In this document: one piece after another, positions 11,734-31,560 of the stretch
How positions within the stretch are numbered: position 1 is the first letter of the stretch
Layout: the number at the start of each line of letters is the position of its first letter
Sequence record: ON529855.1
Strand: one strand, 5' to 3'
DNA length: 64,000 nucleotides
Made by a program: the position numbers and the translations under genes
The notes under the pieces: model-generated
The model's database searches: none
The model's input: the letters and a program-made list of their open reading frames with translations, nothing else
What the model was told of the DNA's origin: nothing

Positions 11734-11897
11734 GGGGTGCTCCCGTTGATGTGCGAGCATATTGCACGCCAAGGTCTTAACAACAAGTTAACGCCGCGCA
11801 GATTTTTCGGCGGCGGCGGGCGTTAAGGTTAATGCGAAAGGCTCGCACAGGGCGGCGTTAACCTTAACGGAATCGTCCGAAAAATTAACCATGCCCG

Positions 11898-11927
11898 TTG
11901 ACGGTTTCTTAACGACTCGGCGCTAGG
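11898..11927 (+). promoter_or_regulatory. Plus-strand CtrA-type promoter (TTGA-N7-TTAAC-GACTC-GGC-GCTAGG)
   Basis: Same box-N8-GCTAG geometry as the cassette promoters; TTGACG -35; GANTC site; upstream TTAACCAT half-site at 11885; no convincing ORF downstream. Confidence 0.6.
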
Positions 11928-12104
11928 CTCAAGGGTTCCATAGCCACGCCTCGCGCCGGGTCCGATCCCCCGCGCGCGGTGTCACGCGCTCGCCTCGACC
12001 GGGGCGGGGCGCCCGGCCGCGCGCCCCGACATCAGGAGGCGCGAGCCCGCCCGGCTGGGCGGTCGATCGGTCATGCCGGCGACCGCCAGGGCGGGGGTGC
12101 GTCG

Positions 12105-12240
12105 AATCGAAACGGCGTCAGGTCAAGTCGGCGGACGTAGAATCGAAATGGCGTCAAGTCAAGTTCGCTCGCGTCAAATTTAAATGGCGTCAAGTCAAGT
12201 TCGCTCGCGTCAAATCGAAACGGCGTCAGGTCAAGTTCAT
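12105..12240. repeat. About 36-bp tandem repeat built from CGTCAAAT / GTCAAGTCAAG units (about 4 copies)
   Basis: GTCAAGTTCGCTCGCGTCAAAT(TT/CG)AAA(T/C)GGCGTCA(A/G) repeated. Confidence 0.9.
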
Positions 12241-12403
12241 CGCCAGGACCGGAGCGAAAACGACGCCGCCCGGCGCGCATGAAAGCGGCCGGGCGGCAGG
12301 ATTGATCGATTCAGAAACAGAGCCCTACAACCATGAGGGCGAAAACAATCTTGGACGCAGCACAGATTTTATCAAGCATATTCAGGGGGTTCCTTCTACT
12401 AAG

Positions 12404-12547
12404 GAGTCACGTCCGGTGGAAAACGTGACAGGTCGTCGGGACGCTACAGGTAGAAAACGCGCGAGTCATCGTCCGGGGCTAACGTGACTGAACTTTTTGT
12501 TAATCCCGGCAGGGAACTGGAGTCACGCCCGGTGGAAAACGTGACTC
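12404..12547. promoter_or_regulatory. Three spaced inverted repeats AGTCAY-N14-GTGAC
   Basis: GAGTCACgtccggtggaaaacGTGACA, GAGTCATcgtccggggctaacGTGACTG, GAGTCACgcccggtggaaaacGTGACTC; all with a 14-nt spacer. Confidence 0.8.
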
Positions 12548-12560
12548 CGGGGTTTTGGCG

Positions 12561-13544
12561 TCAGTCGGCGCTCTGGGCGATGACCGTGGCGGCGGTCGTG
12601 CGGCTGGCGAACTGCTCGCTCGCGATGTCCCCCTTCAGCCCCTCAAAGGCCATGATGCTCGCCCTCAGGTCCGGGGCGATGTAGTCGGTCCCCTCAGCGG
12701 TCGCGTCCGCCTGAAACAGGTCCAGCAGGCGCGACCGCACCCCGGCGGCGTCGTCCGCATAGAGGATCGGCGCCCCTTCCTGCTCGGGCTCGATCCGATA
12801 CGGGCGGGGCTCGCACTCGATCTCGAACGGCCCTTGCCAGTTGCGGACCTCGGCCGGCGCCAGGGCGGCGTCGGACAGTTCGTCATAGACGCCGTTCTCG
12901 CGGTCGCCGCATTCCTCGACCTCGGCCTGAGACACGAAGAACTCATGCCGGGCCTCATCCGCCGCGATGGCGTGGTCCATGATCCACGCCTGACCTTGGA
13001 AGGTCGCGCGATAGGGCAGGGTTTCGGGCGCCGGCAGGGCGGACGCCGGGGGGTCGCGGTCCATCCAGAAGCGATAGAGGGCCGCCCAGGCGCGCGCGCG
13101 CTGGCGGTCGCCGGTCGTGGGCAGATAGGCGTCGTGCAGGGCCTCGGCGGCGGCGGTGCGGTCCGGCGTGTCCGGATCGGCCTGATCCGCTTCAAAGGCG
13201 TCGAAGGTCAGCAGGACCGCCTGCGTGTGACGGGCGGTCCACTCACCGGCCGGACCCGCCGCCAGAACCTCGCGCACCTCGGGGAGGGTCAGGTGGGAAA
13301 ACTGGGCAGGGTCCCCGACGATAAATTCCGAAGGGTCCCCGGCCTTCGATTCGCGAGGGTCCCCGGCGAGGAATTGCGCAGGGTCCCCGGCGATGGATTC
13401 GGCAGGGTCCCCCCGCTCGATTCCGTCCGCGATGCCGTAGAGCCGGCCGATCAGGCCTTGGGCGGCTTCATGGGTGGGGTTGTGACGCATCGCCAGCACT
13501 TGGGCGGCGGCGGCGCGGATCAGGGCGGGATAGGTGATGCTCAT
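12561..13544 (-). CDS. mosaic hypothetical protein with five GDPxxxxx repeats (327 aa)
   Basis: AGAGGAG RBS; CtrA box 13598. Confidence 0.8.
   Translation of the reverse strand: MSITYPALIRAAAAQVLAMRHNPTHEAAQGLIGRLYGIADGIERGDPAESIAGDPAQFLAGDPRESKAGDPSEFIVGDPAQFSHLTLPEVREVLAAGPAGEWTARHTQAVLLTFDAFEADQADPDTPDRTAAAEALHDAYLPTTGDRQRARAWAALYRFWMDRDPPASALPAPETLPYRATFQGQAWIMDHAIAADEARHEFFVSQAEVEECGDRENGVYDELSDAALAPAEVRNWQGPFEIECEPRPYRIEPEQEGAPILYADDAAGVRSRLLDLFQADATAEGTDYIAPDLRASIMAFEGLKGDIASEQFASRTTAATVIAQSAD
13305..13415. repeat. 24-bp period AGGGTCCCC array inside CDS (5 copies)
   Basis: Same core as the arrays at 511-605 and 31350-31560; encodes GDPAESIA/GDPAQFLA/GDPRESKA/GDPSEFIV/GDPAQFSH. Confidence 0.9.
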
Positions 13545-13738
13545 AAAGGGCTCCTCTTGGAGGGAGATGGTCAGAGGTCCTGTCTAGCGGCCAATCGTTA
13601 ACATCCGGTTAACGGGGCGCGTTCAGGGGCCGGCGCCCGCGTTCACCCGGCGTTAAGGTTAACGCCGGGTGGGCGACCCGAAAGCGCCCGCCTGCGGTGC
13701 ATCGCAGGCGGGCGCGGTCCTGACGGGGAGACGGGCCG

Positions 13739-14218
13739 TCAGGCGGTCGGGGACAGTTCGTCCTCGAAGGCGTGATGCTCGGCGCCGTCGCCGGTGCGGA
13801 CCAGATACATGGGGCCGCTCTCGGCGTCAGCCTCGTCTTCGGTCAGGGCGCGCACGACCTCGGCGGGCGTGTCGGGCGGCGTCGTCGCGTCCGAACAGGT
13901 CGAGGTGAACAGGACGCGGGCGCCCGGCTCGAAGGCATAGACCAAGGGCTCGGCGGCGTCGTCGTCGTTCGACGCCTGGAACTCCGCCGACGACCCGTCG
14001 ATCGAGGTGCCGGGCCAGGACGCGCCGGGATCGGCCAGCATCGTCAGACAGCCGCTGATGTCGGGCTGGGCGCGGGTGCCGATATAATCGCGATAGGCGT
14101 CCGGTTCGCCGACCGGGGTTCCGGGGTTCTCGGCGTGGAAGCGTTGCATGGCCGCGTCGAACAGTTGGCGGGGGTCGGTCACGTCGAGGGTGATGGTGAT
14201 CTGGTAGGCGTCGCGCAT
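13739..14218 (-). CDS. hypothetical protein with C-terminal SH3-like motif (PMYLV---DG----AFEDEL)
   Basis: GGGAGA RBS; CtrA box 14268. Confidence 0.8.
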   Translation of the reverse strand: MRDAYQITITLDVTDPRQLFDAAMQRFHAENPGTPVGEPDAYRDYIGTRAQPDISGCLTMLADPGASWPGTSIDGSSAEFQASNDDDAAEPLVYAFEPGARVLFTSTCSDATTPPDTPAEVVRALTEDEADAESGPMYLVRTGDGAEHHAFEDELSPTA

Positions 14219-14287
14219 GGGGGCTCTCCCGGCTGGGTGTCGATGATCTGACCCTAGAGGACAGAAGTTAACAGGCGGTTAACGCGC

Positions 14288-15061
14288 TCAGGTATTGAGC
14301 GCGGGAACCGGGGCGAGGAGGCCATACAGTTCGTTATAGTCGTCGCCCTCGGGCGCCTTCTCCTCGGCGTTCATCTTGGCGTCATAGTCCTGCATCGCCT
14401 TGGCGGTGCGGTCGTAGGCGTCCGCCTTGGCCTTGAGCGCGGCGAGGGCGGTGTTCCCCGCCGAGGCCAGCAGGGCGGTGCGGGCGGCCTCGGGCAGGGC
14501 GTCCCAGGCCTGATCATCCAGATCAAAGGCCAGCATGGCGCGGCTGGCGTCGTCGCGCTCGGCCTCGTCCAGTTCGTCCACGCGGGCCTTCAACAGGTCG
14601 CGCTGTTCGGCGTCGGGCAGATTGGCGAGGATGAAGCGCAGGTCCACGTCCGAAATCCCGTTGCCGCGCAGGAAGGCGACGACGCGATCCCAGGCGGCGA
14701 CCTCGGCCACCGCGTCGCGCGGTTGCAGGTCGAACAGGCGGGCGGCGTGGTTGTCGCTGGCCTCCGACAGCATGGCGATCAGGTCTTCCGCCGTGGCGTC
14801 GTTCAGCAGGGCGGTGGGGCGGGGCAGGGTCCGGCCGTCCGTCACCTGGGTGTCCCAGTTGATGGTCGGCGCTATGGTCAGTTCCGACATGACGGTCCAG
14901 CCGTCTTGCAGGTCGGAGTCGCCTCGGAGGGCGGCCACGGCCTGTTGAACCGCCTCCTGCGGGGTCTCCGCCGTGACGGCGACCGTCTTGTGGGCGTGAA
15001 GGGTGGCGTAGGCCGTAACCAGATAGTTGATCTGGGCCGAAGATCGGACGGGGCTGGACAT
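14288..15061 (-). CDS. hypothetical protein (257 aa)
   Basis: AGGAGA RBS; CtrA box 15106. Confidence 0.8.
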   Translation of the reverse strand: MSSPVRSSAQINYLVTAYATLHAHKTVAVTAETPQEAVQQAVAALRGDSDLQDGWTVMSELTIAPTINWDTQVTDGRTLPRPTALLNDATAEDLIAMLSEASDNHAARLFDLQPRDAVAEVAAWDRVVAFLRGNGISDVDLRFILANLPDAEQRDLLKARVDELDEAERDDASRAMLAFDLDDQAWDALPEAARTALLASAGNTALAALKAKADAYDRTAKAMQDYDAKMNAEEKAPEGDDYNELYGLLAPVPALNT

Positions 15062-15177
15062 GGTGTCTCCTGTCGTTGCGTTGAGGCTGTTCTAGCGCTC
15101 ATGTCTTAACAAAAAGTTAACGCCGGTCAACTCTTTTCGTCGGCCCAGGTCCGTTAACCTTAACGCGGGGTGTTCGC

Positions 15178-15201
15178 AAAACGCCCGGCCGAAGCCGGGC
15201 G
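15178..15201 (-). terminator. Intrinsic terminator GCCCGGC-TTCG-GCCGGGC-TTTT
   Basis: Directly after stop of the 15207 ORF; identical copy at 16059, close variants at 16997, 19240, 26095. Confidence 0.85.
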
Positions 15202-15206
15202 CTGCG

Positions 15207-15953
15207 TCACTTGACCGGGGGCAGGTTATTGAGATCGACGGTCGGCGGGGCGCCGTTTGTGGCGACCTTGGCGGCTTGGAGGATCGACTCCATCAGGGCC
15301 TTGGTCGCCGCGCCGTCGCGCAGACGGGCCGCCGCATCGGTCGATTCGACATCATCAGGAATGATGGTCGGCGCCGCCTTCAACGCCTCCAGACAGGCCT
15401 TCATCGCGGTTTTCGCGCCGAGGGTGGCTTGCGCCGCCGCCCTACGCAGGGCGGCGGCGTAATCGCCCTGCTCTTCGTCCGCCATCTGCAAGAGGCGGTC
15501 CTGCTCCTTCAGCAACCGCGCCGCCTCATGGGCGGTGACGGCGATGGCGTTGGGCAGGGCCTGGGCCTCCTTGGCGTAGAGGGTCAGCAGCCGGGCCGCC
15601 TCCTCGGCGTCTTCGGCATAGACGGCGCCGGCGTCCGACCAGTTGTTGACCAGCACCGCCATGGCGGCCTCGGCCGCATAGTGGGGCAGGGAGGAGCCGC
15701 TGCCGATGTCTTCCAGCTTCTGGCACAGGCGCAGGGTCAGGGGGTCGGTGTTCTGGGCCAGGGCGAGGGTCAGGAACTCAGGCTGGACCTGAAACTCCGT
15801 GACGGAACCGGCGTCGTCGTCCGCCGACAGGCCTTCGGCGTCCCTGTAGTGCTGAATGGCGAACTCCAGCGAGCGTCGCACATGGGCGGGGTCCACCGCG
15901 CCGCCTTCGATCTGCAAGCTGACGATGTAGTTGATGGTGACGGGTGCGGTCAT
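15207..15953 (-). CDS. hypothetical helical protein (248 aa)
   Basis: AGGAGA RBS; CtrA box 15999. Confidence 0.8.
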   Translation of the reverse strand: MTAPVTINYIVSLQIEGGAVDPAHVRRSLEFAIQHYRDAEGLSADDDAGSVTEFQVQPEFLTLALAQNTDPLTLRLCQKLEDIGSGSSLPHYAAEAAMAVLVNNWSDAGAVYAEDAEEAARLLTLYAKEAQALPNAIAVTAHEAARLLKEQDRLLQMADEEQGDYAAALRRAAAQATLGAKTAMKACLEALKAAPTIIPDDVESTDAAARLRDGAATKALMESILQAAKVATNGAPPTVDLNNLPPVK

Positions 15954-16058
15954 CGGTGTCTCCTGATGTGGCGTTGATCCTGTTCTAGCACCGATTCGTT
16001 AACAACAAGTTAACGGCGTGAGGGAACTTCGGCGTTAACCTTAACGCGACGGGATCGC

Positions 16059-16082
16059 AAAACGCCCGGCCGAAGCCGGGCG
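16059..16082 (-). terminator. Intrinsic terminator, TTCG loop
   Basis: Identical to the 15178 terminator. Confidence 0.85.
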
Positions 16083-16087
16083 CTGCG

Positions 16088-16891
16088 TCAAGCGGGGACG
16101 CGCGAGAAGTCGGGGCTGTCGCCGTCCGCGACCGTCAGTTCAATCCACGACATACGCTCCATGTGGCGCTTGACGGACCCCTCCGACGACAGGCCGTTGA
16201 GGATATAGGCCAGGGCGAGAATCTTGCCCGCCTCGCTGGCGCGGGCGCTGATCTGGGTGCAGTAGGAGGAATCCTCCACGAACTCCCAAACGTCGTTGAT
16301 CCGGCGCTCGACGGCGACCCGCATCAGGGGCTCGTCGCCGCTGTCGGTCGGGTCATAGTCGCCCGACGACCCCTCGCCCTCGAAGTCCAGAATCACCGCC
16401 ACGTCGTCGCGTTCCAGGCGCAGCGACGGGAAGCTGAGAACGGCCGGCGCCGAGGGCGCTTCGGGCAGCAGGTCGGCGGCGGCGACCGCCCAGTCTTCCA
16501 GCAGGGTCGAAGCCTCGACCATGGAGGTTCCGTCGCGGCGCGCGTCGGTCAGGGTCTGGACATGGGCGATGCCGGCCTCCAACGCCGTTTCCAGATCGGC
16601 CGGGAAGGCGCGGTCGCCGTCATAGTAGGGGCGGAACAGGTCCACCGCGCGTTCCAATTGGGCTTCCACCTTGGCGACTTGGTGCGAGGGGATGACGATT
16701 TCGCCGAGGCTGTCGCCCGCCATCGCCAGGGTCATGTAGGGTTTCGAGCCGTCCTTGGGGAAGCTGAACCGGACGGTCAGATCGCTGTCGCCGCTTTCGT
16801 CGGTGAGGTCCATGAACAGTTCACAGCGGACATCCTTGAAGTCAGCGTCGTTCTCAACGTAGATCGGCGTGGGTATTTTCTTCTCTTGCAT
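16088..16891 (-). CDS. hypothetical acidic mosaic protein (267 aa)
   Basis: AGGAGA RBS; CtrA box 16937. Confidence 0.8.
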   Translation of the reverse strand: MQEKKIPTPIYVENDADFKDVRCELFMDLTDESGDSDLTVRFSFPKDGSKPYMTLAMAGDSLGEIVIPSHQVAKVEAQLERAVDLFRPYYDGDRAFPADLETALEAGIAHVQTLTDARRDGTSMVEASTLLEDWAVAAADLLPEAPSAPAVLSFPSLRLERDDVAVILDFEGEGSSGDYDPTDSGDEPLMRVAVERRINDVWEFVEDSSYCTQISARASEAGKILALAYILNGLSSEGSVKRHMERMSWIELTVADGDSPDFSRVPA

Positions 16892-16996
16892 GACTGTCTC
16901 CTGTCGGGGCGTTGATCCTGTTCTAGCACCGATTCGTTAACAAGAAGTTAACACGATGCTGCGAAACGCTCGCGTTAACCTTAACGGCGGGCGCCC

Positions 16997-17023
16997 AAAA
17001 ACGCCCCGGCCGAAGCCGGGGCG
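16997..17023 (-). terminator. Intrinsic terminator, TTCG loop
   Basis: CGCCCCGGC-TTCG-GCCGGGGCG-TTTTT. Confidence 0.85.
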
Positions 17024-17028
17024 CAGGA

Positions 17029-17481
17029 TCAGGCGTCGGCCAATGCGCGCACTTGAGCGATGGCCGCGTCTTCGGTGATCTCGCCCGCGTTCAGGCGCGC
17101 GCAGATCACTTCCACCTGACGATGGGCATGGTCGCTGATGGTGGCGGCCTGCACGAAGTCGTCTTCGGCCTCGCCTTCGGAGTCGATGCGATGCAGCCCG
17201 ACATGGGCGGCGTCATCGTCACTGACATGCCAGCCGTATTGCGGCGCGGCGGTCGGTTCGGCGCCCGGCGCGATCACGACGGAAACCCCCGCCTCGGCCA
17301 GCAGGTCCGACAGATCGTCAAACCGGGCCTTGGCGGCGCTGGCGTCGGGGTCGTCGTTCCCTTCATCAAGAACGGCGAGCGCGGCGCGCATGTCCAGGCA
17401 GGCGCTGAGGAAGGCGGCGCCTCCCGCGCTGGTGAAGAAAGCGACGGCGAGCGATGGCATGGCGTAAGGGTTGGTTTTCAT
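17029..17481 (-). CDS. hypothetical protein (150 aa)
   Basis: GGGAGA RBS; CtrA box 17528. Confidence 0.75.
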   Translation of the reverse strand: MKTNPYAMPSLAVAFFTSAGGAAFLSACLDMRAALAVLDEGNDDPDASAAKARFDDLSDLLAEAGVSVVIAPGAEPTAAPQYGWHVSDDDAAHVGLHRIDSEGEAEDDFVQAATISDHAHRQVEVICARLNAGEITEDAAIAQVRALADA

Positions 17482-17538
17482 CAGGCGTCTCCCCGGTGGT
17501 TGATGATGTGACCCTACAGGCCAGAGGTTAACAAGCGG

Positions 17539-17958
17539 TTAATGGGTGCGAAGTTCGGCGGTCGGCGTTTCGACGCCGTCCCGGTAGGCGAGCGAGCCGA
17601 GGACGCCGAGGATCGGGTTATAGTCGCCGCGCTCTTTCTCGGCGGCGTAGAAGCGTTCGAGGATGGCGGGTTGGGCGGCGAAGCGGTTGTTCCGCCACAG
17701 GGGGGTCAGTTTCGGCGGCAGACCGTCGAAGATGAACCAACCGCGCTCATTCGTCGCGCCGCCCATCCAACGCCGCTTGCGGCTGATGTAGATTTCACGC
17801 TCGCCGTTGCCCGCCAGCAGCCAGACCGTTCGCCCTGGCAGGGCCAGCGACAGGTCGCGCAGGGCGTCGCGCATCATCTGTTCCGACAGGGCGACAAGGC
17901 GGATTTCCGCCGCCTCGACCGCTTCGAGGGCGACGACGAAGGGATCGCGGCGGCTCAT
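17539..17958 (-). CDS. hypothetical protein (139 aa)
   Basis: ATGA overlap with upstream gene; stop inside box 17528. Confidence 0.7.
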   Translation of the reverse strand: MSRRDPFVVALEAVEAAEIRLVALSEQMMRDALRDLSLALPGRTVWLLAGNGEREIYISRKRRWMGGATNERGWFIFDGLPPKLTPLWRNNRFAAQPAILERFYAAEKERGDYNPILGVLGSLAYRDGVETPTAELRTH

Positions 17959-18254
17959 GCGGCGACGGGGACACAGCGCGTCCCTTCCGGCAGGAGGTCG
18001 AGCGCGGCTTGGGTGAAATGGAAGCGAATCGGTCCCTCATAGTCGCCGCGCTCGATGGCGTCGGCAGCGGCCGTTCCCCAGCCTGTGGAAACCGAACCCT
18101 TGGGCGTGATGTCCACCCAATTGGGGGCGTCATAGAGAATCTTGATCCGCACGGTGTTTTCGGTGCGGCGGATCAGAAAATACTCGGTCCCGTCCGGGCC
18201 GACGATCTTGTGCGTCGGCTTGGACAGCTTGGCGCTCGGGGGCAGGAAGGCCAT
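17955..18254 (-). CDS. hypothetical protein (99 aa)
   Basis: AAGGAGA RBS; CtrA box 18296. Confidence 0.75.
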   Translation of the reverse strand: MAFLPPSAKLSKPTHKIVGPDGTEYFLIRRTENTVRIKILYDAPNWVDITPKGSVSTGWGTAAADAIERGDYEGPIRFHFTQAALDLLPEGTRCVPVAA

Positions 18255-18395
18255 GAGGTGTCTCCTTTGTTCCTGATCGTTCTAGCAGGTAGAAGTTAAC
18301 AAGAGGTTAACGGCAGGCGAAAAGGCGCGGCGGCCGGCGTTAACCTTAACGCGACGGGCTCGCAGAAAGGCCGGGGGAGCGCCCCGGCCTTCGCG

Positions 18396-19091
18396 TCACT
18401 CGCTGGCGTGGCCCGCGTCGATCTTCACCGCCAGTTCGTCCATCCGGTCGGCCTTGTGGCGCAGCCAGTCGGCGGCCCGCTCGATGACCTCGACCATCGG
18501 CAGGCGGTGGACCAGACCGGACGGGAACGATCCCGACAGGTTGTCCAGCAGCTTGATCGGCGGGACGTGGCCGCAGGCGATATAGGCCGCCGCAAGGTGG
18601 TCGGTCAGGTTCATGCCGCCGCCGGTCAGGGCGATTTCATAGTCCGGTTCGTCGTGGCGACCGTTGTCGATCTCGATCAGGGTGCAGGCCAGACCCCAGG
18701 CGTCGAAGCGCGCGGCGATGGCGGCGACGCCCTCCGAGTCGACGTATTTCAGATCGACCGGCCAGCCGTAGTTCATCATGGGGTCGAAGCTGTCGCGCCA
18801 CTCGTCGTAACCGTCCGACTGGCGGAAGGCGTCTTCGAGTTCTTCGTCGGCCAGCACGGCGGCGCCGTCCACTTCGAACAGGGCGCGGGCCTTGGGGAAG
18901 TCGTCCCAGAGTTCCGAAGCGCGCTCGTCGATCACGCCCAGCGTGATCGCGGGCAGGACCGTTTGAAAGCCGGGCTCGCCGGTGTCCGCGTTGTGGAACT
19001 CCGACCAATCGCGCTCAATCGAGTCGTTGGTGATCGAGGCCAGCGAGAAGGTGGCGTCGGCGGCGATGGGGCGGGCGAAGGGCTGCGACAT
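18396..19091 (-). CDS. conserved phage hypothetical protein (ALTGGGM motif)
   Basis: AGGAGA RBS before ATG 19091; CtrA box 19145. Confidence 0.8.
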   Translation of the reverse strand: MSQPFARPIAADATFSLASITNDSIERDWSEFHNADTGEPGFQTVLPAITLGVIDERASELWDDFPKARALFEVDGAAVLADEELEDAFRQSDGYDEWRDSFDPMMNYGWPVDLKYVDSEGVAAIAARFDAWGLACTLIEIDNGRHDEPDYEIALTGGGMNLTDHLAAAYIACGHVPPIKLLDNLSGSFPSGLVHRLPMVEVIERAADWLRHKADRMDELAVKIDAGHASE

Positions 19092-21970: not shown

Positions 21971-22191
21971 GGGGGTCTCCTTCGTTGAGGCTCCCTTGTC
22001 GCACGGATTCGTTAACAATAGGTTAACGCGGCGCGTTTATTTTCCGTTAAGGTTAACGGCCAGGCCGGGACCGAAAAAGCCCGCCGGGGGAGACAACCCG
22101 GCGGGCTCGGTTCAGATCAGCGCCAGCAGGCTGAGCGCGATCAGAAGGTTCATGGCGATGACCGGGCGGACGTGTGTCCTCAGGACGGCGG

Positions 22192-22503
22192 TCAAGCGAC
22201 GGGCTCCGGGAAGCGCATCCCGTCGCCGGTCTGGACTTCCAGCGCGGTCGCGGCGGGCTTCAGCCCGGACTGTTCCAGATCGACGCCCAGCGAGCGGACG
22301 GCGTCCTTTTCATCCTCGCGCCAGGCCCCGGCGACCGGGATCGCGCGTTCCAGCACCTTCTTGCGGTCGTCCTGATAGGCGCCGAGCGCCCGGAACTGGA
22401 CCGGCGAGGCCTTGGTGCGCTGGCGGCTGAGCATGGTCACGACCAGCCGACGCTGCGGCGAGACGGTGATGCGGAAGGTTCGCGTGACGGTGGGTGTCGG
22501 CAT
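22192..22503 (-). CDS. hypothetical protein (103 aa)
   Basis: AAGGAGG RBS. Confidence 0.7.
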   Translation of the reverse strand: MPTPTVTRTFRITVSPQRRLVVTMLSRQRTKASPVQFRALGAYQDDRKKVLERAIPVAGAWREDEKDAVRSLGVDLEQSGLKPAATALEVQTGDGMRFPEPVA

Positions 22504-23621: not shown

Positions 23622-23683
23622 GGTGTCTCCTCCATGGGTGATCTCGATTGAGACCACCCTACAGGCAAGAAGTTAACAAGAGG

Positions 23684-24166: not shown

Positions 24167-24340
24167 GGGGCGTCTCCCTTGTTCGATGATTCCTTGTAGC
24201 GGCGATCTCTTAACAAGAGGTTAACGCCGTGACAAGAGCGCGCGGGCGTTAACCTTAACGCGACGTTAAGGTTAACGCCCGGCTAAAGGGAAAGACGCGC
24301 CGCCGGGGGAGACAACCCGGCGGCGCGGCAGGCGGCGGCC

Positions 24341-24901
24341 TCAGACGTCGAGGTCGCCGTATTGCGTCCCGCACTGGACGATTTCGCCGGTGGCGTCATC
24401 CCAGTGGATGCGGTTCAGGCGCAGCTTGTTGCCGGTGCGGGCGTGGGTCCATTCCACCTGACAGGTAATCATGTCGTCGAAGACCGCCGAGGGCGCGCCG
24501 TATTGCGTCCAGTCCACGCCGCCCCGGTCGTCAACCTGCTGCTTGGCGTCGGACAGGATGCGGGCCAGAACCTCGGGCATCAGGCGGCCGGGCGCCTTCT
24601 TGAGGCCGTAGGCCCCGCGTCCGTTGTTCGCCATATTGCTGAAGTTCGTGAAGTCCTGCGTGTAGTTCTCGACCTCGATCGACCCCGGCTGGGGCAGGTC
24701 AAACATCAGGTCCGACAGCATGTCGCCAACCGTATAGGTCTCGGTGGCGGCGTCCAGCTTGTCGGCCAGTTCGGCGCCCTCGTCGCCCGGCTGGACGTAG
24801 AGTTCGGCGCCGTCAGCGCGGCGCGCCAGGACGCCGCCCATCGAATCACGCCACGCCTTGAACGCGCCGTCGTCGCTCTCCCAGGTCGGAGCCTTGCTCA
24901 T
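24341..24901 (-). CDS. hypothetical protein (186 aa)
   Basis: ATGA overlap with upstream gene. Confidence 0.75.
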   Translation of the reverse strand: MSKAPTWESDDGAFKAWRDSMGGVLARRADGAELYVQPGDEGAELADKLDAATETYTVGDMLSDLMFDLPQPGSIEVENYTQDFTNFSNMANNGRGAYGLKKAPGRLMPEVLARILSDAKQQVDDRGGVDWTQYGAPSAVFDDMITCQVEWTHARTGNKLRLNRIHWDDATGEIVQCGTQYGDLDV

Positions 24902-25311
24902 GCCTCGGCCTCCTCTTCGACTTCGGCGTAGGCGCTGGGGATGCGCTGGCCGGTGTGGTCGCAGAACAGGTCCGCGTTCTCATAGTTGATTTGGGCGCCG
25001 TCGATCCGCCAGCCGGTCGAACAATCGTTCAGGTGGTCATAGCAGACCTGGGCGAATTGTTGCTGCACCGCGTCGAACGACAGGGCGGCGCCGTCGCGGG
25101 TGACGAAGTAGAGCGGATAGCCGCCGAGGTCCGTGAAAGGTCCGGCGCGCAGCGCGGCCTTGACCTGCTGAAGGGCCTTGATCGGGCGGGTGTCCGAGAC
25201 GAGCAGCGGTTGGCGATAGCCGCAGCGCAGGGGCGGGCGCTTCGACCAGTCAGGGTCGCGCGTGTCGAAGAGGTCGCCGTGGCTGACGAAAAGGTGGGCG
25301 GGCAATGTCAT
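24898..25311 (-). CDS. conserved phage hypothetical protein (GGYPLYF-T-DG motif)
   Basis: GGAGGAGA RBS; CtrA box 25357. Confidence 0.8.
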   Translation of the reverse strand: MTLPAHLFVSHGDLFDTRDPDWSKRPPLRCGYRQPLLVSDTRPIKALQQVKAALRAGPFTDLGGYPLYFVTRDGAALSFDAVQQQFAQVCYDHLNDCSTGWRIDGAQINYENADLFCDHTGQRIPSAYAEVEEEAEA

Positions 25312-25478
25312 GGGGTCTCCTCCCGTTGCTGACCCTCCCTGTATCGCACGAAGTTCTTAACAACAAGTTAACGCCGCGATTTATTTTCAGCGGGGGAGGC
25401 GGCGGCGTTAACCTTAACGCGCCGTTAAGGTTAACGCGAGCGGGTCGCAGGAAGAGAGAGGGCCGTAGCCCTCTCCCC

Positions 25479-25988
25479 TTATTGCTGCTCGACATGAGCG
25501 CGGTAATAGGCGACGCCTTCGGCCTCAGGCATCAGGTTCAGGATCACCGCCTGAGGCTGCTTCTCATGGATGACCTTGACGTGGGCGGCGAGCGGGTGCG
25601 GCGCCGTCAAGTCCATCTGGAAGATGCCGGGCGAGCCCGGTTTGGTGAAGAGGACTTTTTTCTTGATGGTGCGGCGATAGGCCTTGAGCCATTCGTGGGC
25701 GGTAATCTCCTCGCCGATGAGCAAAGACAGGTCCATGTCGATCAGGCCCAGCCCTTCGGACAGGTCGAACTGGGGATAGGTCGCCTTGATGCGCGCCTCC
25801 AAGGCGGCGAGGTCGTCATAGGTGAATCGGCCGACCGGGTGGATGCGGTCTTCGCCGCCCTGGCCGGTGTTGGAGGCCTCGGCGAACTTCTCGCCATCGA
25901 CATAGACGGTGGCGGTGTAGGCGGTCGTCTCCTCCGACAGGGACGGCATGGTCTTGAGGTTCTTGAGGGTGATGACGGGTTTCTGCAT
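25479..25988 (-). CDS. conserved phage hypothetical protein (SEET-A--A-VY-DG...N-G-GG motif)
   Basis: AGGAGA RBS; CtrA box 26033. Confidence 0.8.
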   Translation of the reverse strand: MQKPVITLKNLKTMPSLSEETTAYTATVYVDGEKFAEASNTGQGGEDRIHPVGRFTYDDLAALEARIKATYPQFDLSEGLGLIDMDLSLLIGEEITAHEWLKAYRRTIKKKVLFTKPGSPGIFQMDLTAPHPLAAHVKVIHEKQPQAVILNLMPEAEGVAYYRAHVEQQ

Positions 25989-26126
25989 GGCGGTCTCCTG
26001 ATCCGGTGATGTCTCACCCTAGCCGCAAGGTCTTAACAAATCGTTAACGCCGGTCAGCCTCGGCGCTGCGTTAAGGTTAACGCGGTCGGGTCGCAAAAAG
26101 GCGCCCGGTCGAAGCCGGGCGCTGGT

Positions 26127-26267
26127 TCAGGCGGCGGTGCGGTAGCGGGTGTGGCCCCGGTCCCAGGCGTAGGCCTCGACCGATCCGCTCGGGTGGGGGT
26201 TGTTCCACCACTTGACGCCCCGGTGCGCGGCGGCGTAGCCCGCGCCTTCGATCTGGGCGGCGTCCAT
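26127..26267 (-). CDS. small Rmf/CrpP-like motif protein (46 aa)
   Basis: MDAAQIEGAGYAAAHRGVKWWNNPHPSGSVEAYAWDRGHTRYRTAA; TGATG coupling; followed by a terminator. Confidence 0.6.
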   Translation of the reverse strand: MDAAQIEGAGYAAAHRGVKWWNNPHPSGSVEAYAWDRGHTRYRTAA

Positions 26268-26512
26268 CAGGCGCCGATCCGGTGGGCCGGGCAGAAGCCC
26301 GACACGACCTTGACGCGACCGCGCTTGAAGCCGGGGCGCAGGGCGCGCGCCGAGCGTTCGGCGTCGGCGGTCTTCATGTGGCCGCAGGCGCAGGATGCGC
26401 CGGGGTCGCGGGCCTGGGCCTCGCGCACCTTGTCGGCGCCGGCCTGGGTGCCGAGCCAGCCGCAAAAGGGCTCGCCGCCGACCGTGATGTGTGCGGGTTG
26501 AGTGTTCGTCAT
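26267..26512 (-). CDS. small Cys-containing protein (81 aa)
   Basis: AGGAGG RBS. Confidence 0.65.
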   Translation of the reverse strand: MTNTQPAHITVGGEPFCGWLGTQAGADKVREAQARDPGASCACGHMKTADAERSARALRPGFKRGRVKVVSGFCPAHRIGA

Positions 26513-26521
26513 CGGGGCCTC

Positions 26522-26719
26522 CTATAGGTTCAGGGCGGCGTCGAACGCCTGGGATTGCAGTTTCTTGGCGGCTTCGGCCTCGGCGGGGTAGAGCCGGGCC
26601 AGACCGTCGAAGCGCTCTTTCTGATGCGAGCGCTCGCCCTCGGCGGCGGTCATGTGCATGACCTCGCTCCACAGGTGGGCCATTTCGAGGATCAGGACGG
26701 AGCGGAGGGAAGCGTTCAT
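26522..26719 (-). CDS. hypothetical protein (65 aa)
   Basis: AAGGAGA RBS; CtrA box 26761. Confidence 0.7.
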   Translation of the reverse strand: MNASLRSVLILEMAHLWSEVMHMTAAEGERSHQKERFDGLARLYPAEAEAAKKLQSQAFDAALNL

Positions 26720-26771
26720 GACGGTCTCCTTGTTGACCTCGCCACCCTAGCAGCGAGGTCTTAACAAGAGG

Positions 26772-27269
26772 TTAACAGCGGCGAAGCATTTCGCGCATCA
26801 GGGCTTCCTCGTTGCGGGCGATGTCCAGCGCGGCGCGGTCGTGGCCTTGCTCATGCGCCTGCTTGGCCTGCTGTCGGCAGATGTCCTGGCGCTTGCGGAT
26901 GTCGGCCTCCGACAGGGTGCGGAACAGGGCGTCGGCCTCCTGATCGACCTTGACGGTCCAGTGCTGCTGCGATTCGTCGTCGGCGCGCAGGTGGGCGGGG
27001 AAGTAGGCCTGGGGCGCCGGGTCAGCCGGGACGGCGGCCGGGGTGTAGAGCCCCAGCACGACCGCCAGCGCGTCGCGGTGAAACTGCGAACCGTCCATCG
27101 CCGAGTTCAGCACGAAGGCGCGCGCCTCCAAATCATCGCCGAACGTCGGCGATTCGTCCTCGCGATGGATTTCATAGCGCGGGGCGTCGTAGCCGTCCGT
27201 GGTGTCGAACAGGCCCCAGCCCTCGGCGCAGGCGCGGTCTTCATCAAAAGGAATGGGCGTGGTTTTCAT
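26772..27269 (-). CDS. hypothetical protein (EGW-LFD...EI-R-DE motif)
   Basis: AGGAGA RBS; CtrA box 27314; stop inside box 26761. Confidence 0.8.
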   Translation of the reverse strand: MKTTPIPFDEDRACAEGWGLFDTTDGYDAPRYEIHREDESPTFGDDLEARAFVLNSAMDGSQFHRDALAVVLGLYTPAAVPADPAPQAYFPAHLRADDESQQHWTVKVDQEADALFRTLSEADIRKRQDICRQQAKQAHEQGHDRAALDIARNEEALMREMLRRC

Positions 27270-27427
27270 CGGGGTCTCCTGTCGTGGTCGGCGTCTGTTC
27301 TAGCACCGATTTGTTAACAAGAGGTTAACAAAGTTCGCGGCGGCGCCGGGCGTTAACCTTAATGCGCTGTTAAGGTTAACGGCGGGCGGGCGAAAGGGAC
27401 GCCCCGGCGCGAGGCCGGGGCGCGGGG

Positions 27428-27640
27428 TCAGTAGGGCCGGTCGAGGATGCGCCAGCCGGGCTTGTCGTCGGGGCCGGTCTCCGGCTCGACCTGATAGACG
27501 GTCCAGCGCTGGCCCATCGGCGATTGCAGGGCGGCGGTGGTGTCCGGGTAGGTCTTTTCGGTCACGTCGCGGTCGTCCTTGGCGAGCCAGTCGCCGACCC
27601 ACGGTTCGCCGGTGCGGTGCAGCAGGTAAACGGCCCCCAT
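27428..27640 (-). CDS. hypothetical protein (70 aa)
   Basis: TGATG coupling. Confidence 0.65.
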   Translation of the reverse strand: MGAVYLLHRTGEPWVGDWLAKDDRDVTEKTYPDTTAALQSPMGQRWTVYQVEPETGPDDKPGWRILDRPY

Positions 27641-27852
27641 CAGACGACCGCCAGCAGGCGCGCGTGCGAGGTCTCGACCGAATAGGCCTCGATCTGGAGC
27701 CCCGGCAGGGCGGCGCGCAGTTCGTCGCGCACAGCGAGGGCTTCGGCGGGGTCTTCGGTGGTCAGGCGCAGTTCGCCGATCCGGCGGGCTGGGGCGCCCT
27801 CGGCGGCGCGGCGCGACAGTTCCAGCCGCAGGTCGTAGGGGGTGTCGGTCAT
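27640..27852 (-). CDS. hypothetical protein (70 aa)
   Basis: GGGAGA RBS; CtrA box 27895. Confidence 0.7.
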   Translation of the reverse strand: MTDTPYDLRLELSRRAAEGAPARRIGELRLTTEDPAEALAVRDELRAALPGLQIEAYSVETSHARLLAVV

Positions 27853-27905
27853 CGGTGTCTCCCGTGATTGAGCGTCCGGTATAGCCGGAAGGTCTTAACA
27901 AATCG

Positions 27906-28271
27906 TTAACGGCTGGGTGCGCTTAGGCGGGCGATGATTTCGTCGTTCGTCATCGTGTCCATCAGGTCTTGCACCTGCCGGGCCTTGTCATCCTCGACCG
28001 CCTGGGCCGCCGCCTGGGCGCGGCGATGCTCGGCCAGCGCCGCCTTGCCGGCCTCGGTGGTCTCCGGGTCGATGGTCATGTAAAGGCTGACCTCGCGGCC
28101 CTGCCGATCCACGAAGGTCAGGCTTCCAGACGGCCGCACCTTGACGGTGAACTGCGCCTTGACCAGCCGCTCGGCGGTCTCCTGACCGAAGTCCCCGCCG
28201 AAGCTGCCGCCCGCCGCCTTGACGGTGTTGTCGCTCTTGAGCCGGGTGTGATAGCCGATGTTCTTGAACAT
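27906..28271 (-). CDS. hypothetical protein (121 aa)
   Basis: AAGGAG RBS before ATG 28271; stop inside box 27895. Confidence 0.75.
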   Translation of the reverse strand: MFKNIGYHTRLKSDNTVKAAGGSFGGDFGQETAERLVKAQFTVKVRPSGSLTFVDRQGREVSLYMTIDPETTEAGKAALAEHRRAQAAAQAVEDDKARQVQDLMDTMTNDEIIARLSAPSR

Positions 28272-28282
28272 GGGGTCGCTCC

Positions 28283-28621
28283 TTAGAAGGGAATGTCGTC
28301 GTCGAACGACGGGGGCGGGGCGTAGGTCTGGGCGGCGCGCGCGCGGCGGGCGGCGTCCATCTCGGCGCGCTCCTCGTCCGTCGCACCCCAATACTCGTCG
28401 TCTTCCGGGTGCGCGCCGGGCTCGCCGCGATAGTGCGGGTTCTTCACCCAAGCGTCGAACGGGTGCAGCAGCCACTCCACGTCAGGCGCCTCGAAGCCTT
28501 CCGACTGAGCGAACCCCGACAGGGCCAGGCTCATGTATTCGCCCTGGCTCAGCGACTCCATCGCCAGAGCGTCTTCCTTTTCGCGGCGGGCCTCTTCGGC
28601 CATTTCGATCACATCGCGCAT
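28283..28621 (-). CDS. small acidic protein ending in an SSB-type tail FDDDIPF (112 aa)
   Basis: AAGGAGAGA RBS; CtrA box 28663; no recognisable OB fold. Confidence 0.75.
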   Translation of the reverse strand: MRDVIEMAEEARREKEDALAMESLSQGEYMSLALSGFAQSEGFEAPDVEWLLHPFDAWVKNPHYRGEPGAHPEDDEYWGATDEERAEMDAARRARAAQTYAPPPSFDDDIPF

Positions 28622-28864
28622 CGGCGTCTCTCCTTGTGAGCCCCCTTTATGACAGCCAGAAGTTAACAACAAGTTAACGGCGGCGCTTTTCTGCATTTTT
28701 CTTCGGGGGGGCGGCGGCGGGCGTTAACCTTAATAGCCTGTTAAGGTTAACGGGCGGCTTCCAGCCTGGGAAACGGCGTCCCGGAACGGGACGCCTCTCC
28801 TAGAAGGTGAGCAGGATGACCAGCAGGGCCAGAAAGAGGCGGGAGGCGCCGGCCAGCTTGTCGA

Positions 28865-29335
28865 TCAAGACGCGTTGTCCGCCTTCATCGCCGCGCACAG
28901 GGTCTCGACCAGCCGCTTGTGGCGCGCCAGAGCGGCGGGGTCCGTGCGGTCGCCTTGGAAGGGGACCAGCACCAGAGGCGTGGCCGAGGGGTCCAGCGCC
29001 CAGAAGATTTCGGTCTCGCCGTCCGTCATCTGGAAGCTATAGACGTTCAGGTCGGCTGGGGCGTGGTCGAGGAAATAGACGCGGCCGTTGAACCGGGCGT
29101 TGAAGGGCTGTTCCGGCGTCGCCAAGTCGATCTCGGCCAGCACGGCGTCGCGCACGGCGTCAATCGGGTGGACGCCGTCTTCACCGGTTTCGTCAGGACG
29201 GGATTCGGCCTCGGCCTCCGCGTCGCGCTTGATGTCCTCGACCACGGCGGCGCGCGCCTCCTCCCAAGTCGCGCTGGCGCTAGGCTCCTCGTCGGGCATG
29301 AAGCCCGAGACGTTCGATCCGGTCACATAAGGCAT
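28865..29335 (-). CDS. hypothetical protein (G-MPD motif, 156 aa)
   Basis: GGGAGA RBS; CtrA box 29383. Confidence 0.75.
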   Translation of the reverse strand: MPYVTGSNVSGFMPDEEPSASATWEEARAAVVEDIKRDAEAEAESRPDETGEDGVHPIDAVRDAVLAEIDLATPEQPFNARFNGRVYFLDHAPADLNVYSFQMTDGETEIFWALDPSATPLVLVPFQGDRTDPAALARHKRLVETLCAAMKADNAS

Positions 29336-29426
29336 CGGGGTCTCCCTTGTTGATGCGAGGCTGCAATCTACGCGACAAGGTCTTAACAAAAAGTTAACAG
29401 CAGCGCAATCGCTTTTCTTCGCGATG

Positions 29427-29455
29427 TTAACCTCTTGTTAACTTCTTCGTGGGAT
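29427..29455 (+). promoter_or_regulatory. Plus-strand CtrA-box promoter TTAACCTCTTGTTAAC
   Basis: Exact reverse complement of the cassette box, divergent from box 29383, drives the 29489 gene. Confidence 0.85.
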
Positions 29456-29488
29456 AAGGGACAGGTCAACAAAAACAGGAGATCGCCG

Positions 29489-29734
29489 ATGGGCGAAGTC
29501 ATCCCTCACCGCGTCTGGCATCACAAGCCGTCCGGGCGCACCGCCAGCATCTTCGGCGCCGTCCCTTGGGTCTCGGCGGCGCAAGAGTCCGAATGGGAAC
29601 GGGTCACGGTCGGCTGGACCGTCCGCCACCCGGACGGCACGACCGGGGTCGGTCGCTTCGCCTTCGAGACGAAGGACGAGGCGCAGGCTTGGGTCGATAA
29701 GAATCCGAACTATCCGGGCAACCAGCAGGACTAG
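29489..29734 (+). CDS. conserved phage hypothetical protein (81 aa)
   Basis: AGGAGA RBS; only plus-strand gene of the cassette region; hairpin after the stop. Confidence 0.75.
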   Translation: MGEVIPHRVWHHKPSGRTASIFGAVPWVSAAQESEWERVTVGWTVRHPDGTTGVGRFAFETKDEAQAWVDKNPNYPGNQQD

Positions 29735-29788
29735 GAACAGGGGCGTCGGTCGCAAGGCCGGCGCCCTTCGTCTTTGCGACCCGCTCGC

Positions 29789-30150
29789 GTTAACCTTAAC
29801 AGAGCGTTAACCTTAATGCCCCTGCCCGCTCTAGGGGTATGACCGGGTATGACCAGGTATGACCGGGTCATACCGGCGCGGATTCCCGCTGAAAATCACC
29901 CGAATTCGCCGAATTGCGCCCAAAATCGCCGGATTTTGACCCTAAATCACTGTTTTTGCTCGATTTTTCGGTATTTCAGGCCCGGCGGCGGCCGTTAACC
30001 TTAACAGGGCGTTAACCTTAACGCGGTTTTGGTTAACGGGGCATTAACCTTAACGCCTGGATGGTTAACGTGGCGTTAACCTTAACGCGGTGATGGTTAA
30101 CGGGCCGTTAACCTTGACGGCGGGAGGGTTAACGGCCCCAGGGTTAATCG
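29789..30150. repeat. Dense non-coding cluster of TTAA-N7-TTAA and GTTAACCTTAAC elements
   Basis: N7 pairs at 29796, 30001, 30033, 30065, 30097 interleaved with N2 pairs. Confidence 0.85.
29834..29875. repeat. 10-bp tandem GGTATGACCR x3 followed by its inverse GGTCATACC
   Basis: gggtatgaccgggtatgaccaggtatgaccgggtcatacc. Confidence 0.85.
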
Positions 30151-30154
30151 GGGC

Positions 30155-30412
30155 GGCGTCAAATCGCGCTCGCGTCAAATTCGGCCGGCGTCAAATCGAA
30201 ACGCCGTCAAGTCAAGTCTGTCGCGTTGAAGCGCGCTCGCGTCAAATCGGCCGATCGTCAAATCGCGCTCCCGTCAAATCCAGATCGCGTCAAATTCGCG
30301 GGGCGTCAAATCGACCGGGCGTCAAATCGCGCTCCCGTCAAATCGACCGGGCGTCAAATCGGCGAGGCGTCAAGTCGACCGGGCGGCCTGAAGCGGGCCG
30401 GCGTCAAGTCGG
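30155..30412. repeat. CGTCAAAT(C/T) repeat array, about 16-17 bp period, about 14 copies
   Basis: Includes GTCAAATCGAAACGCCGTCAAGTCAAG, nearly the same as the 12.1-12.2 kb unit. Confidence 0.9.
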
Positions 30413-30608
30413 GCTGCCAGGGCGCGCCCGAGCGGGCTTGCGCGGCGCTCCGCCTCCCAGGGAGGACGCCTGGAAGAAACGGCCTGAAGCGCGCCCCAGC
30501 GCCTCTTTTTACCCTGAGCCGGGGCAGGGTCAAGCCGAACAGGGTCGAGAAGGCCGTTTTCCGGGCCGTGGAGCGCCCTGGCGCGGGCGGGGCGTCCGCA
30601 GGCTCGGC

Positions 30609-31060
30609 AGAGTCACGAAACCCATCCACGGGCCGGAAAACCAGGCAGGACGGGCGATTGTCAGTCATGATACCTACGAAGCGTGACTCTGCCGGGATTT
30701 TTGTCAGTCACGAAACCCGGAGGCGGGCTTCGCCGGCGATCCTGGCGCCCAGGCGGGTCAGTGTCAGCGGTTGTGTCAATGCGGGACACAATAAGGCAGG
30801 ATTAGGGCGAAATGGGATTTCAGGGCGGAGTCACGTTTGCCGAAACGGGCGCTCGGGACTGCTGTTGATTTTATTGAGGTTTTTCGCCGGAGCCGGACGT
30901 TTTGGAGTCACGATTGCCGTTGTGCGGTGCAGCAATGCGCCGGATTTGGGTGGGTCCAGGCGGGGCGAAACAGAGTCACGTTTTCCTAAGCCTTTGGGAT
31001 CATTACGCTTTTCAGGCGGGGCCAACACCTGAGTCACGGTTGACACGAACGATGACTCCG
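30609..31060. promoter_or_regulatory. Cluster of (G/C)AGTCAY(G) half-sites including two AGTCAY-N14-RTGAC palindromes
   Basis: Half-sites near 30610, 30663, 30706, 30828, 30904, 30972, 31031; full pairs at about 30664-30687 and 31033-31056. Confidence 0.75.
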
Positions 31061-31138
31061 TCAGTCAGAGGCCCAAAAACAAGAAAATCGGTGTAAAAAC
31101 AGTGATTTAGGGCCGTTTTTCGGGATTTAGGGGTGAAA

Positions 31139-31321
31139 TTAGCGGCGATTCCGGTGAAATCGGTCGATGGCGGTGTCGTGAGGGGCTTGCCGCCCGTCAA
31201 AACGCCCTGCACGCTCCCGATGACGCCGTTTGCGCTCCCAGGGACCGGGCCAGATGATCTGGACGGTCCAGACCAGCAGCAGGAGGAACACAAAGGCCCC
31301 CATGACGATCGCTACCCACAT
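31139..31321 (-). CDS. possible small membrane protein (60 aa)
   Basis: N-terminal hydrophobic helix; GGAGAG upstream. Confidence 0.4.
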   Translation of the reverse strand: MWVAIVMGAFVFLLLLVWTVQIIWPGPWERKRRHRERAGRFDGRQAPHDTAIDRFHRNRR

Positions 31322-31349
31322 CGCGCGCTCTCCGTGACCTGGTGAATGA

Positions 31350-31560
31350 CCAGGGTCCCCGCCGGATGAATCTGGAGGGTCCCCCGACCGAAAATTCGCC
31401 AGGGTCCCTGGACGAAAAATTCCAAAGGGTCCCCGGCCGTTAATTCAGCAGGGTCCCCCGGTCGAAAAATCCCGAGGGGTCCCCGCGTTGAATTCGCCAG
31501 GGTCCCTGGGCGATGAATCCAGACGGGTCCCCGGTCCAGAAAATCCGGAAGGGTCCCCGC
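31350..31560. repeat. AGGGTCCCC array, 24-26 bp period, about 9 copies
   Basis: Core preceded by an RAAWT tract, as in the arrays at 511 and 13305. Confidence 0.9.

Follow-up and report, generated by a model that had tools for sequence, protein, structure and literature searches.

The concatemer junction of phage T7 contains a 160-bp terminal repeat flanked at both ends by arrays of short repeats, with promoters that fire across the junction. In phage T5, the terminal repeat is at least 10 kb long and carries pre-early take-over genes together with clusters of repeats and palindromes, and the left repeat has an injection-stop region at its inner border. Closer to the locus considered here are the long repeats of the phiCbK-like phages: the left end of phiCbK has been mapped by read coverage and tag ligation to codon 652 of terL and its right end, by the same means, to a point 10,287 bp downstream, and the repeat of Colossus has been found to start just after terL and to have a fuzzy right end (PMC3556154). 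This article describes the corresponding early region of the Brevundimonas jumbo phage vB_BpoS-Domovoi (Dolichocephalovirinae; ON529855.1, 352,705 bp), starting from a stretch of 64,000 nucleotides, hereafter the window, that carries ordered sets of short repeated signals. The three such sets in the genome are best explained jointly by a direct terminal repeat of ~37.8 kb, in which the set beside terL (set 3) would form the leader and the other two (sets 1 and 2) would be internal, conserved signal sets; the probability of this reading is put at roughly 0.6.

The window matches positions 1-64000 of the record at 100%, and window coordinates are thus also record coordinates. The record was deposited as circular and has no mapped ends; the seven records of Brevundimonas pondensis jumbo phages considered here are all circular, the five that were inspected hold no annotated ends, and the source paper on these phages is without terminus analysis. 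Motif counts were made genome-wide, on the entire Domovoi genome. Annotated genes between 1 and 36 kb all lie on the minus strand, with the exception of one at 29489-29734.

The leader beside terL and the predicted left end

The 2.2 kb of non-coding DNA 3' of terL contains, in gene-sense order, a GGGGACCC array, a small hydrophobic open reading frame (ORF), GTGAC(TC) sites in DNA of lower GC content, a TTGACG array, a GTTAAC/TTAAC array, and a gene on the opposite strand. The identical order is found downstream of terL in phiCbK, CcrSC, CcrPW, and Colossus, where the leader lies inside the terminal repeat at ~0.4-1.9 kb from its left end. Because both the order and the terL-adjacent place are shared with four relatives, set 3 (29.4-31.6 kb) is, on these comparisons, the conserved repeat leader, an element present in every member of the Dolichocephalovirinae checked, a short way inside the left end of the genome. 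A sequence-only reading of the window had proposed a long terminal repeat of early genes that begins just downstream of terL, which fits all of the relatives with mapped or annotated ends, and had correctly put the end of the terminase genes at 31919, where terL ends. It had also taken the right-hand junction for one end of the repeat: a conserved leader does stand beside the terL-side end, but that end is predicted at ~31.55-31.9 kb and not at 30.6-31.1 kb.

The left ends of the relatives do not all lie at the same place. In phiCbK and CcrSC the cut falls within one and the same Arg codon of terL, where an AT-rich coding signature, GAAKTTTTGTGGGAYTACTAT, is present. This signature was not found in the terL genes of CcrPW, Colossus, Domovoi, or Gurke, and a phiCbK-type end inside Domovoi terL was rejected because it is missing. 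(An intein within terL, as in Domovoi, has also been reported for phiCbK and Colossus.) The Domovoi TerL protein is closest to those of CcrPW and Colossus, at 66% identity over the C-terminal 300 residues. The annotated left end of CcrPW starts exactly at GGGGACCCTTCG, 36 nt past terL, and the coverage boundary of Colossus lies 60 nt beyond that position. In Domovoi, the first array unit, nearest terL, reads CTGC-GGGGACCCTTCCGG (31558-31551) and resembles the CcrPW left end; unlike in CcrPW, no solitary motif adjoining the terL stop was found. By analogy with these two phages, the Domovoi left end may be placed at 31.55-31.9 kb. Position 1 of the Kabachok record (ON529852.1) is equivalent to window position 31547, 12 nt from the point at which the first array unit corresponds to the CcrPW end, and here the physical end may have left its mark on the assembly, or the coincidence may be due to chance.

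The predicted distal end and the length of the repeat

The right-end regions of phiCbK, CcrPW, Colossus, and CcrSC were aligned with a Domovoi segment chosen for its shared GGGACCCAAGGCC core. The right ends of phiCbK (10,287), CcrPW (18,404), and CcrSC (23,946) fall in one column of this alignment, which corresponds to Domovoi position 346,502, where the gene-sense strand reads TCGCCGGGGCGCC up to the boundary and AGGCGG after it. The boundary box itself (TGTTTCAAAAYGGGAC..CAGGGACCCAAGGCC..GGGGCGCC) is present in Domovoi as a single copy at 346,502-346,560, and it was not found at 11.9-13.5 kb. Independently of the box alignment, CcrPW 18,404 is exactly the position at which the BLAST match with Domovoi breaks off, and the gene just before the box (346625-346852) is a homologue of the last gene in the CcrSC repeat. 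An exact-match scan of IMG/VR with the box core returned the known Caulobacter phages and further contig matches.

The gene content and promoter distribution of the region extend over the same interval. Domovoi genes at 11.1, 7.0, 3.1, and 346.6 kb have homologues inside the repeats of the relatives, in roughly collinear order. TTAA-N7-TTAA boxes, which a report on this phage group describes as confined to repeats (PMC9437464), lie within the annotated repeat in the sequence parts of CcrPW, Colossus, and CcrSC that were examined, and in Domovoi the interval from 346,918 to 31,623 holds 71 of the 72 boxes, which continue across 12 kb uninterrupted. In Marchewka and Gurke, box and leader are 38.6 and 37.4 kb apart, respectively. 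The Domovoi terminal repeat thus probably spans the record origin, from 346,502 on one side to ~31.55-31.9 kb on the other, and its implied length is 37,762 to ~38,025 bp (~37.8 kb). Weak support comes from the ratio of packaged DNA to head length, for which the inputs are published tables (PMC3556154 and the Domovoi source paper): a 37.8-kb repeat gives 1.052 kb/nm and an 18.5-kb repeat 1.000, compared with 1.047 for phiCbK-like phages (standard deviation 0.036, n = 6).

The shorter of these lengths corresponds to the proposal of the sequence-only reading, in which a repeat of 18-19 kb would end at 12.3-12.6 and 30.6-31.1 kb, each end being marked by the same packaging or duplication signals. 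The two junctions do share these signals, in order and in the same orientation, their spacing fits the repeat length of 18,404 bp in CcrPW, the phage closest in TerL, and the GGGGACCC core is associated with ends in the relatives. However, the boundary box present at 346,502 is absent from the left-hand junction (12-13.4 kb), genes with CtrA boxes continue for 18 kb past that junction and include those with homologues inside the repeats of the relatives, the set 2 block aligns to an element in the interior of the repeats of CcrPW and Colossus, a third set exists, and the head-length ratio is slightly low. An end at 12 kb is accordingly improbable. Of the proposed ~18-kb repeat, the terL-side end stands approximately; the distal end probably lies ~18 kb beyond the 12-kb junction, and the predicted length becomes ~38 kb.

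Public assemblies were also considered as a proxy for the ends. A 934-bp Logan contig proved to be a 95-98% identical variant that spans the array and is uninformative on ends; assemblies do not break at the ends because both repeat junctions exist within virion DNA. In phiCbK (10243/10458) and CcrPW (18359/18477), two GGGACCC(A)AGGCC-like boxes, ~120-215 bp apart, stand on either side of the right repeat end. Such paired boxes hint at a bipartite termination signal; the outer box of the pair is degenerate in Domovoi.

Three signal sets and their candidate roles

On the plus strand, the layout of a set is a promoter facing away from the early genes, a CGTCA(A/G)(A/G)T array, GAGTCAC sites (which contain GANTC), and a GGGTCCCC array; coordinates are collected in Table 1. 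That the same four signals occur in the same order and orientation at both window junctions, as first read from the letters, was borne out, and the arrays are far above chance expectation from shuffled sequences. CGTCAAAT is present 14 times in the window (1.46 expected; 0 of 100 shuffles reach 14), with 13 of the 14 copies on the plus strand within the 12-kb and 30-kb arrays, and AGGGTCCCC is likewise present 14 times (0.84 expected), always on the plus strand and at a count that no shuffle attains. GAGTCAC is not enriched overall (9 copies, 7.6 expected); all nine are confined to 12404-12547 and 30610-31037, in stretches of 54-56% GC as against 65.5% for the genome, and AGTCAY-N12-16-RTGAC palindromes lie at 12405, 12464, 12521, 30663, and 31032. 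The promoter motif TT(A/G)A-N7-TTAA(C/G)-N7-9-(G/C)CTA has at least 27 minus-strand copies, and its plus-strand copies are only those at 11898, 350338, and 351291; a variant form stands on that strand at 29427, and the earlier statement that the region has only two plus-strand CtrA promoters is correct for 11.9-31.6 kb (11898 and 29427). The set 2 and set 3 junctions gave no match to Rfam RNA families, a scan for E. coli-type promoters, which is uninformative for Caulobacter-type promoters, returned 0 sites, and a terminator scan mainly picked up the GGGGACCC units themselves. GC-rich blocks adjoin the set 2 and set 3 arrays (11,930-12,100 and 30,410-30,600).

Table 1. Coordinates of the signal sets and associated features in Domovoi (window coordinates unless marked as record; TRF, Tandem Repeats Finder).
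Feature	Position	Strand	Details
Window part of the predicted direct terminal repeat/CtrA-box early region	1-31558		Predicted from box alignment, CtrA-box zone, and synteny
Set 1 promoter	record 351,291	+	Precedes CGTCA array; outside window
Set 1 CGTCA(A/G)GT array	record 351,990-352,200		Just before record origin; outside window
Set 1 AGGGTCCCC array	512-605	+	4 units, period 25, intergenic (motif scan, TRF)
Set 2 CtrA-type promoter	11898-11925	+	TTGA-N7-TTAAC-N8-GCTA; divergent from promoter of gene 11110-11733, aimed into arrays
Set 2 CGTCAAAT/GTCAAGTCAAG array	12099-12238	+	TRF period 36, 3.9 copies; gene-sense strand reads TTGACG
Terminator-like hairpin and T-run	12263-12276	-	Gene-sense, between small ORF and array (terminator scan)
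Unannotated hydrophobic ORF, 22 residues (MLDKICAASKIVFALMVVGLCF)	12311-12379	-	Ribosome-binding site; directly after the three palindromes
Set 2 GAGTCAC-N14-GTGACTC palindromes (3)	12403-12547		57-59 bp spacing; GANTC within each half-site
Coding sequence, 327 residues	12561-13544	-	Five 8-residue GDP repeats in N-terminal part
Set 2 AGGGTCCCC array	13306-13412	+	TRF; 5 units, period 24, in frame within coding sequence 12561-13544
Set 3 CtrA box TTAACCTCTTGTTAAC	29427-29442	+	Upstream of the only plus-strand gene of the region
Gene, 81 residues	29489-29734	+	Opposite strand to all neighbours; homologue CcrSC gp031c likewise opposite-strand, inside CcrSC repeat
Leader elements	29835-30135	+	GGTATGACC (3 copies), phased A/T-rich stretch, GTTAACCTTAAC array (29989-30135, period 32)
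Set 3 CGTCAAAT/GTCAAGTCAAG array	30155-30410	+	Period 16, ~13-14 units (TRF: 30155-30385, 12.7 copies)
Set 3 GAGTCAC cluster	30605-31062		Lower GC; four GGAGTCACGNTTGCC direct units, three AGTCAYGAWACC units, two palindromes
ORF with hydrophobic N-terminus, 60 residues	31139-31321	-	Between GAGTCAC region and GGGTCCCC array; same slot as phiCbK gp001 and CcrSC gp004
Set 3 (A)GGGTCCC(C) array	31352-31559	+	9 units, period ~25 (TRF: 31376-31559)
Spacer between terL and array	31559-31918		TTAAC boxes, AT-rich stretch, terL terminator; alternative (Colossus-like) left-end position
terL	31919-34642	-	Intein inside (precomputed Pfam Intein_splicing match); without the AT-rich in-gene cut signature of phiCbK/CcrSC
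terS	34883-35572	-	Annotation

The two junctions exist as described, but the pair is not unique, as a third, partial set (set 1, 351.3 kb-0.6 kb) straddles the record origin and is without a GAGTCAC cluster. In a genome-wide scan, arrays of the CGTCAAAT and AGGGTCCCC types were found in the three sets and nowhere else in Domovoi. All three sets are kept in the same order, orientation, and relative positions in Marchewka (~90% DNA identity to Domovoi) and in Gurke (77.7% identity in the C-terminal region of TerL). Recent segmental duplication was rejected as their source: an all-against-all BLASTP comparison of 77 early-zone proteins revealed no paralogues flanking the sets, and its one weak pair (E = 2.7e-5) comprises genes that flank no set. 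Since the sets are conserved in relatives and their flanking genes are not paralogues, the triplet is viewed as conserved architecture and not as a recent duplication. Directly beside the set 1 CGTCA array, at record 351,830-351,990, a GC-rich unit of ~70 bp is duplicated. In the leader of set 3, the GGTATGACC copies are followed by an inverted copy and then by ~100 bp of phased A/T-rich repeats (29835-29990, 51% GC), and similar 10-bp-phased A-rich repeats are seen at CcrSC 3299-3384.

Alignments with the relatives suggest that set 2 is internal to the repeat. The set 2 palindromes and the adjacent 22-residue ORF align to an element at 13.0 kb of the 18.4-kb CcrPW repeat and at 11.8 kb of the Colossus repeat, the ORF itself aligning with the hydrophobic mini-gene gp022 of Colossus and the equivalent position in CcrPW. 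A structured RNA was considered for these palindromes and rejected, with no Rfam match and no compensatory stem changes. A protein-binding DNA palindrome appears more plausible than an RNA structure because the half-sites GAGTCA/TGACTC are invariant across five phages and the mismatches are uncompensated. Single intergenic GAGTCAC-N14-GTGACTC palindromes also occur outside the window (record 206,092; 247,382; 288,130; 292,071; 324,747), beside integrase, DNA polymerase, and major capsid genes, among others, and on the upstream side of the latter two. A phage regulator that acts at sites containing GANTC may use these as operators; Domovoi also encodes a GcrA-like protein and DNA methylases.

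The AGGGTCCCC array of set 2 is located in a coding sequence that has no family match in Pfam or PHROGs. Within the GDP repeats of its Domovoi product, each GDP is encoded as GGG-GAC-CCT, and across Domovoi, Kabachok, Marchewka, and Gurke this holds for 21 of 22 GDP triplets, where codon usage predicts 0.0085 per GDP. Such retention of a rare triplet argues for selection on the DNA motif itself. It also bears on the idea that sets 1 and 2 are functionless, decaying relics of old leader duplications or insertions, which would accord with their being shorter and less complete than set 3, down to the missing GAGTCAC cluster of set 1. With the codon triplet kept in four phages, no paralogous genes at the flanks, and position, order, and orientation preserved in a phage as divergent in TerL as Gurke, this is the least probable of the explanations weighed here.

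Several observations connect the core of the arrays to genome ends. A GGGACCC core forms the left end of CcrPW, is found 38-45 nt inward of the right end in phiCbK, CcrPW, and CcrSC, and has a second copy ~70-170 nt outside the right end in phiCbK and CcrPW. In the mechanism proposed here, the GGGGACCC core would be recognised by the packaging machinery, TerS being the first candidate; copies standing alone would sit at fixed offsets from the cuts, and arrays would serve as loading platforms. A packaging-recognition role is favoured because the core is linked to ends and the array in the coding sequence appears to be under DNA-level selection. A divergent promoter pair borders each set, and early transcription could be split into blocks of ~18, 13, and 5.5 kb by these CtrA-type promoters acting with the TTGACG and GANTC arrays. 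The TTGACG units match the -35 consensus of Caulobacter housekeeping promoters, and no -10 partner was found for them. A bolder and rather doubtful version would have all three same-orientation GGGGACCC arrays act as terminase loading platforms, such that packaging or repeat regeneration could start at any of them, with nested repeats of ~38, 20, and 7 kb as the outcome, or alternatively processing or entry in three steps.

A role unrelated to packaging has also to be considered. The arrays might be one to three replication origins or centromere-like sites, built of TTGACG iterons, a lower-GC stretch, and GANTC sites and serving a circularised or episomal genome. This is unlikely, if less so than the other alternatives, and would be compatible with repeat boundaries at 346,502 and ~31.55-31.9 kb. 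It draws on the 13-14 regular 16-bp iterons beside a stretch of 44-56% GC and on GANTC clusters, which resemble cell-cycle-controlled origins in Caulobacter. Dolichocephalovirinae can, in addition, persist as episomes with a presumed origin (PMC12195562). However, no DnaA boxes were found near the arrays within one mismatch, genes for an initiator or for partition are not among the neighbours, and Pfam and PHROGs place none of the proteins beside the sets in a DNA-binding or initiator family. The replication module lies far from the arrays, at 219-250 kb, and the gene annotated in this zone as a 'putative DNA primase' is ArdC-like. That gene (record 349,334-350,245, minus strand, outside the window) encodes ArdC-N and zincin metallopeptidase domains (Pfam E = 3.5e-36 and 2.2e-42) and matches the PHROG 'anti-restriction protein', and because of these matches it is considered an ArdC-like anti-restriction gene; it is situated 3-4 kb from the predicted distal repeat end.

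This location is one of the features that recall T5. By analogy with the stepwise entry of that phage, the sets could make DNA transfer pause or stop, so that three early blocks would enter one after another, and the long repeat full of early and take-over genes, the clustering of repeats and palindromes at block borders, and the anti-restriction gene close to the distal boundary would all be in keeping with such a role. Against it, phiCbK, CcrSC, CcrPW, and Colossus have one set, at the extreme left and not at the inner repeat border as in T5, and gated entry is accordingly rated as quite improbable, a shade below the 18-19-kb repeat and above only the relics.

The reading preferred here, a ~37.8-kb repeat with set 3 as its leader and sets 1 and 2 inside it, has to be set against several points that weigh on the other side. 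Every Domovoi boundary is derived by homology, and the left end could fall anywhere in 31.55-31.9 kb; the array does not coincide with the cut, because the distance between the two varies over ~0.4-1.9 kb among the relatives. Colossus is one of the two phages closest in TerL and, of that pair, the only one with published coverage data; its right boundary is fuzzy and lies ~0.5 kb before the box. The annotated ends of CcrPW and CcrSC may not be independent of those of phiCbK. The roles suggested for the arrays are candidate functions, and selection on the internal sets is not fully explained by a terminal repeat.

One further element of the window lies apart from the sets. A GC-rich intergenic hairpin at 22072-22193 (minus strand) gave sub-threshold Rfam scores (ar14, 29.3 bits against a gathering threshold of 58.8; Rhizobiales-2, 30.5 against 40) and is probably a terminator-like stem and possibly a small RNA.

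Implications and comparison with known systems

The reading outlined above predicts one boundary to the base (346,502) and confines the other to 350 bp. It implies that ~390 kb of DNA is packaged and that none of the other Dolichocephalovirinae records inspected has a repeat as long as the ~38 kb predicted for Domovoi. The box with the GGGACCC core and the leader are common to the four named genera or groups examined (Shapirovirus, Bertelyvirus, Colossusvirus, and the Domovoi group), making them concrete candidates for the signals that start and stop packaging in long-repeat phages. The array within a coding sequence, through its rare codon triplet, offers a handle for separating DNA-level from protein-level function. 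Should packaging be able to start at any of the three arrays, the terminal repeat would be modular, an arrangement for which no phage is known to offer a precedent.

The repeats of the phiCbK-like phages (phiCbK, CcrPW, CcrSC, and Colossus) are the nearest counterparts of the Domovoi region. Like the repeat predicted for Domovoi, they start in or just after terL, contain small early genes and CtrA-box promoters, have the same leader order, and carry a right-boundary box with the same GGGACCCAAGGCC core. Domovoi differs in its predicted length (~38 kb, compared with 10-24 kb in the records inspected) and in having three signal sets instead of one, with one of the GGGGACCC arrays lying within coding sequence. 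The CtrA-site-enriched repeats of pilus- and flagellum-specific phages of Alphaproteobacteria, as described in the available part of that report, share with Domovoi the TTAA-N7-TTAA boxes that are strongly skewed, intergenic, and confined to the repeat or early zone; the same part makes no mention of GGGGACCC, TTGACG, or GAGTCAC arrays, of the boundary box, or of Brevundimonas pondensis jumbo phages (PMC9437464).

Domovoi resembles T7, to which the sequence-only reading had already likened it, in its short direct-repeat arrays near a predicted repeat boundary and in its promoters across the junction, whereas it differs in that the arrays are inside the repeat near one end and recur internally, and in that the distal boundary would be a single box. 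With T5 it shares a predicted repeat of at least 10 kb, early take-over genes, and clustered repeats and palindromes. From these comparisons of sequence, the Domovoi region is most readily viewed as a terminal repeat of the phiCbK type that would be longer than those of its relatives and would carry a triplicated, conserved signal set.

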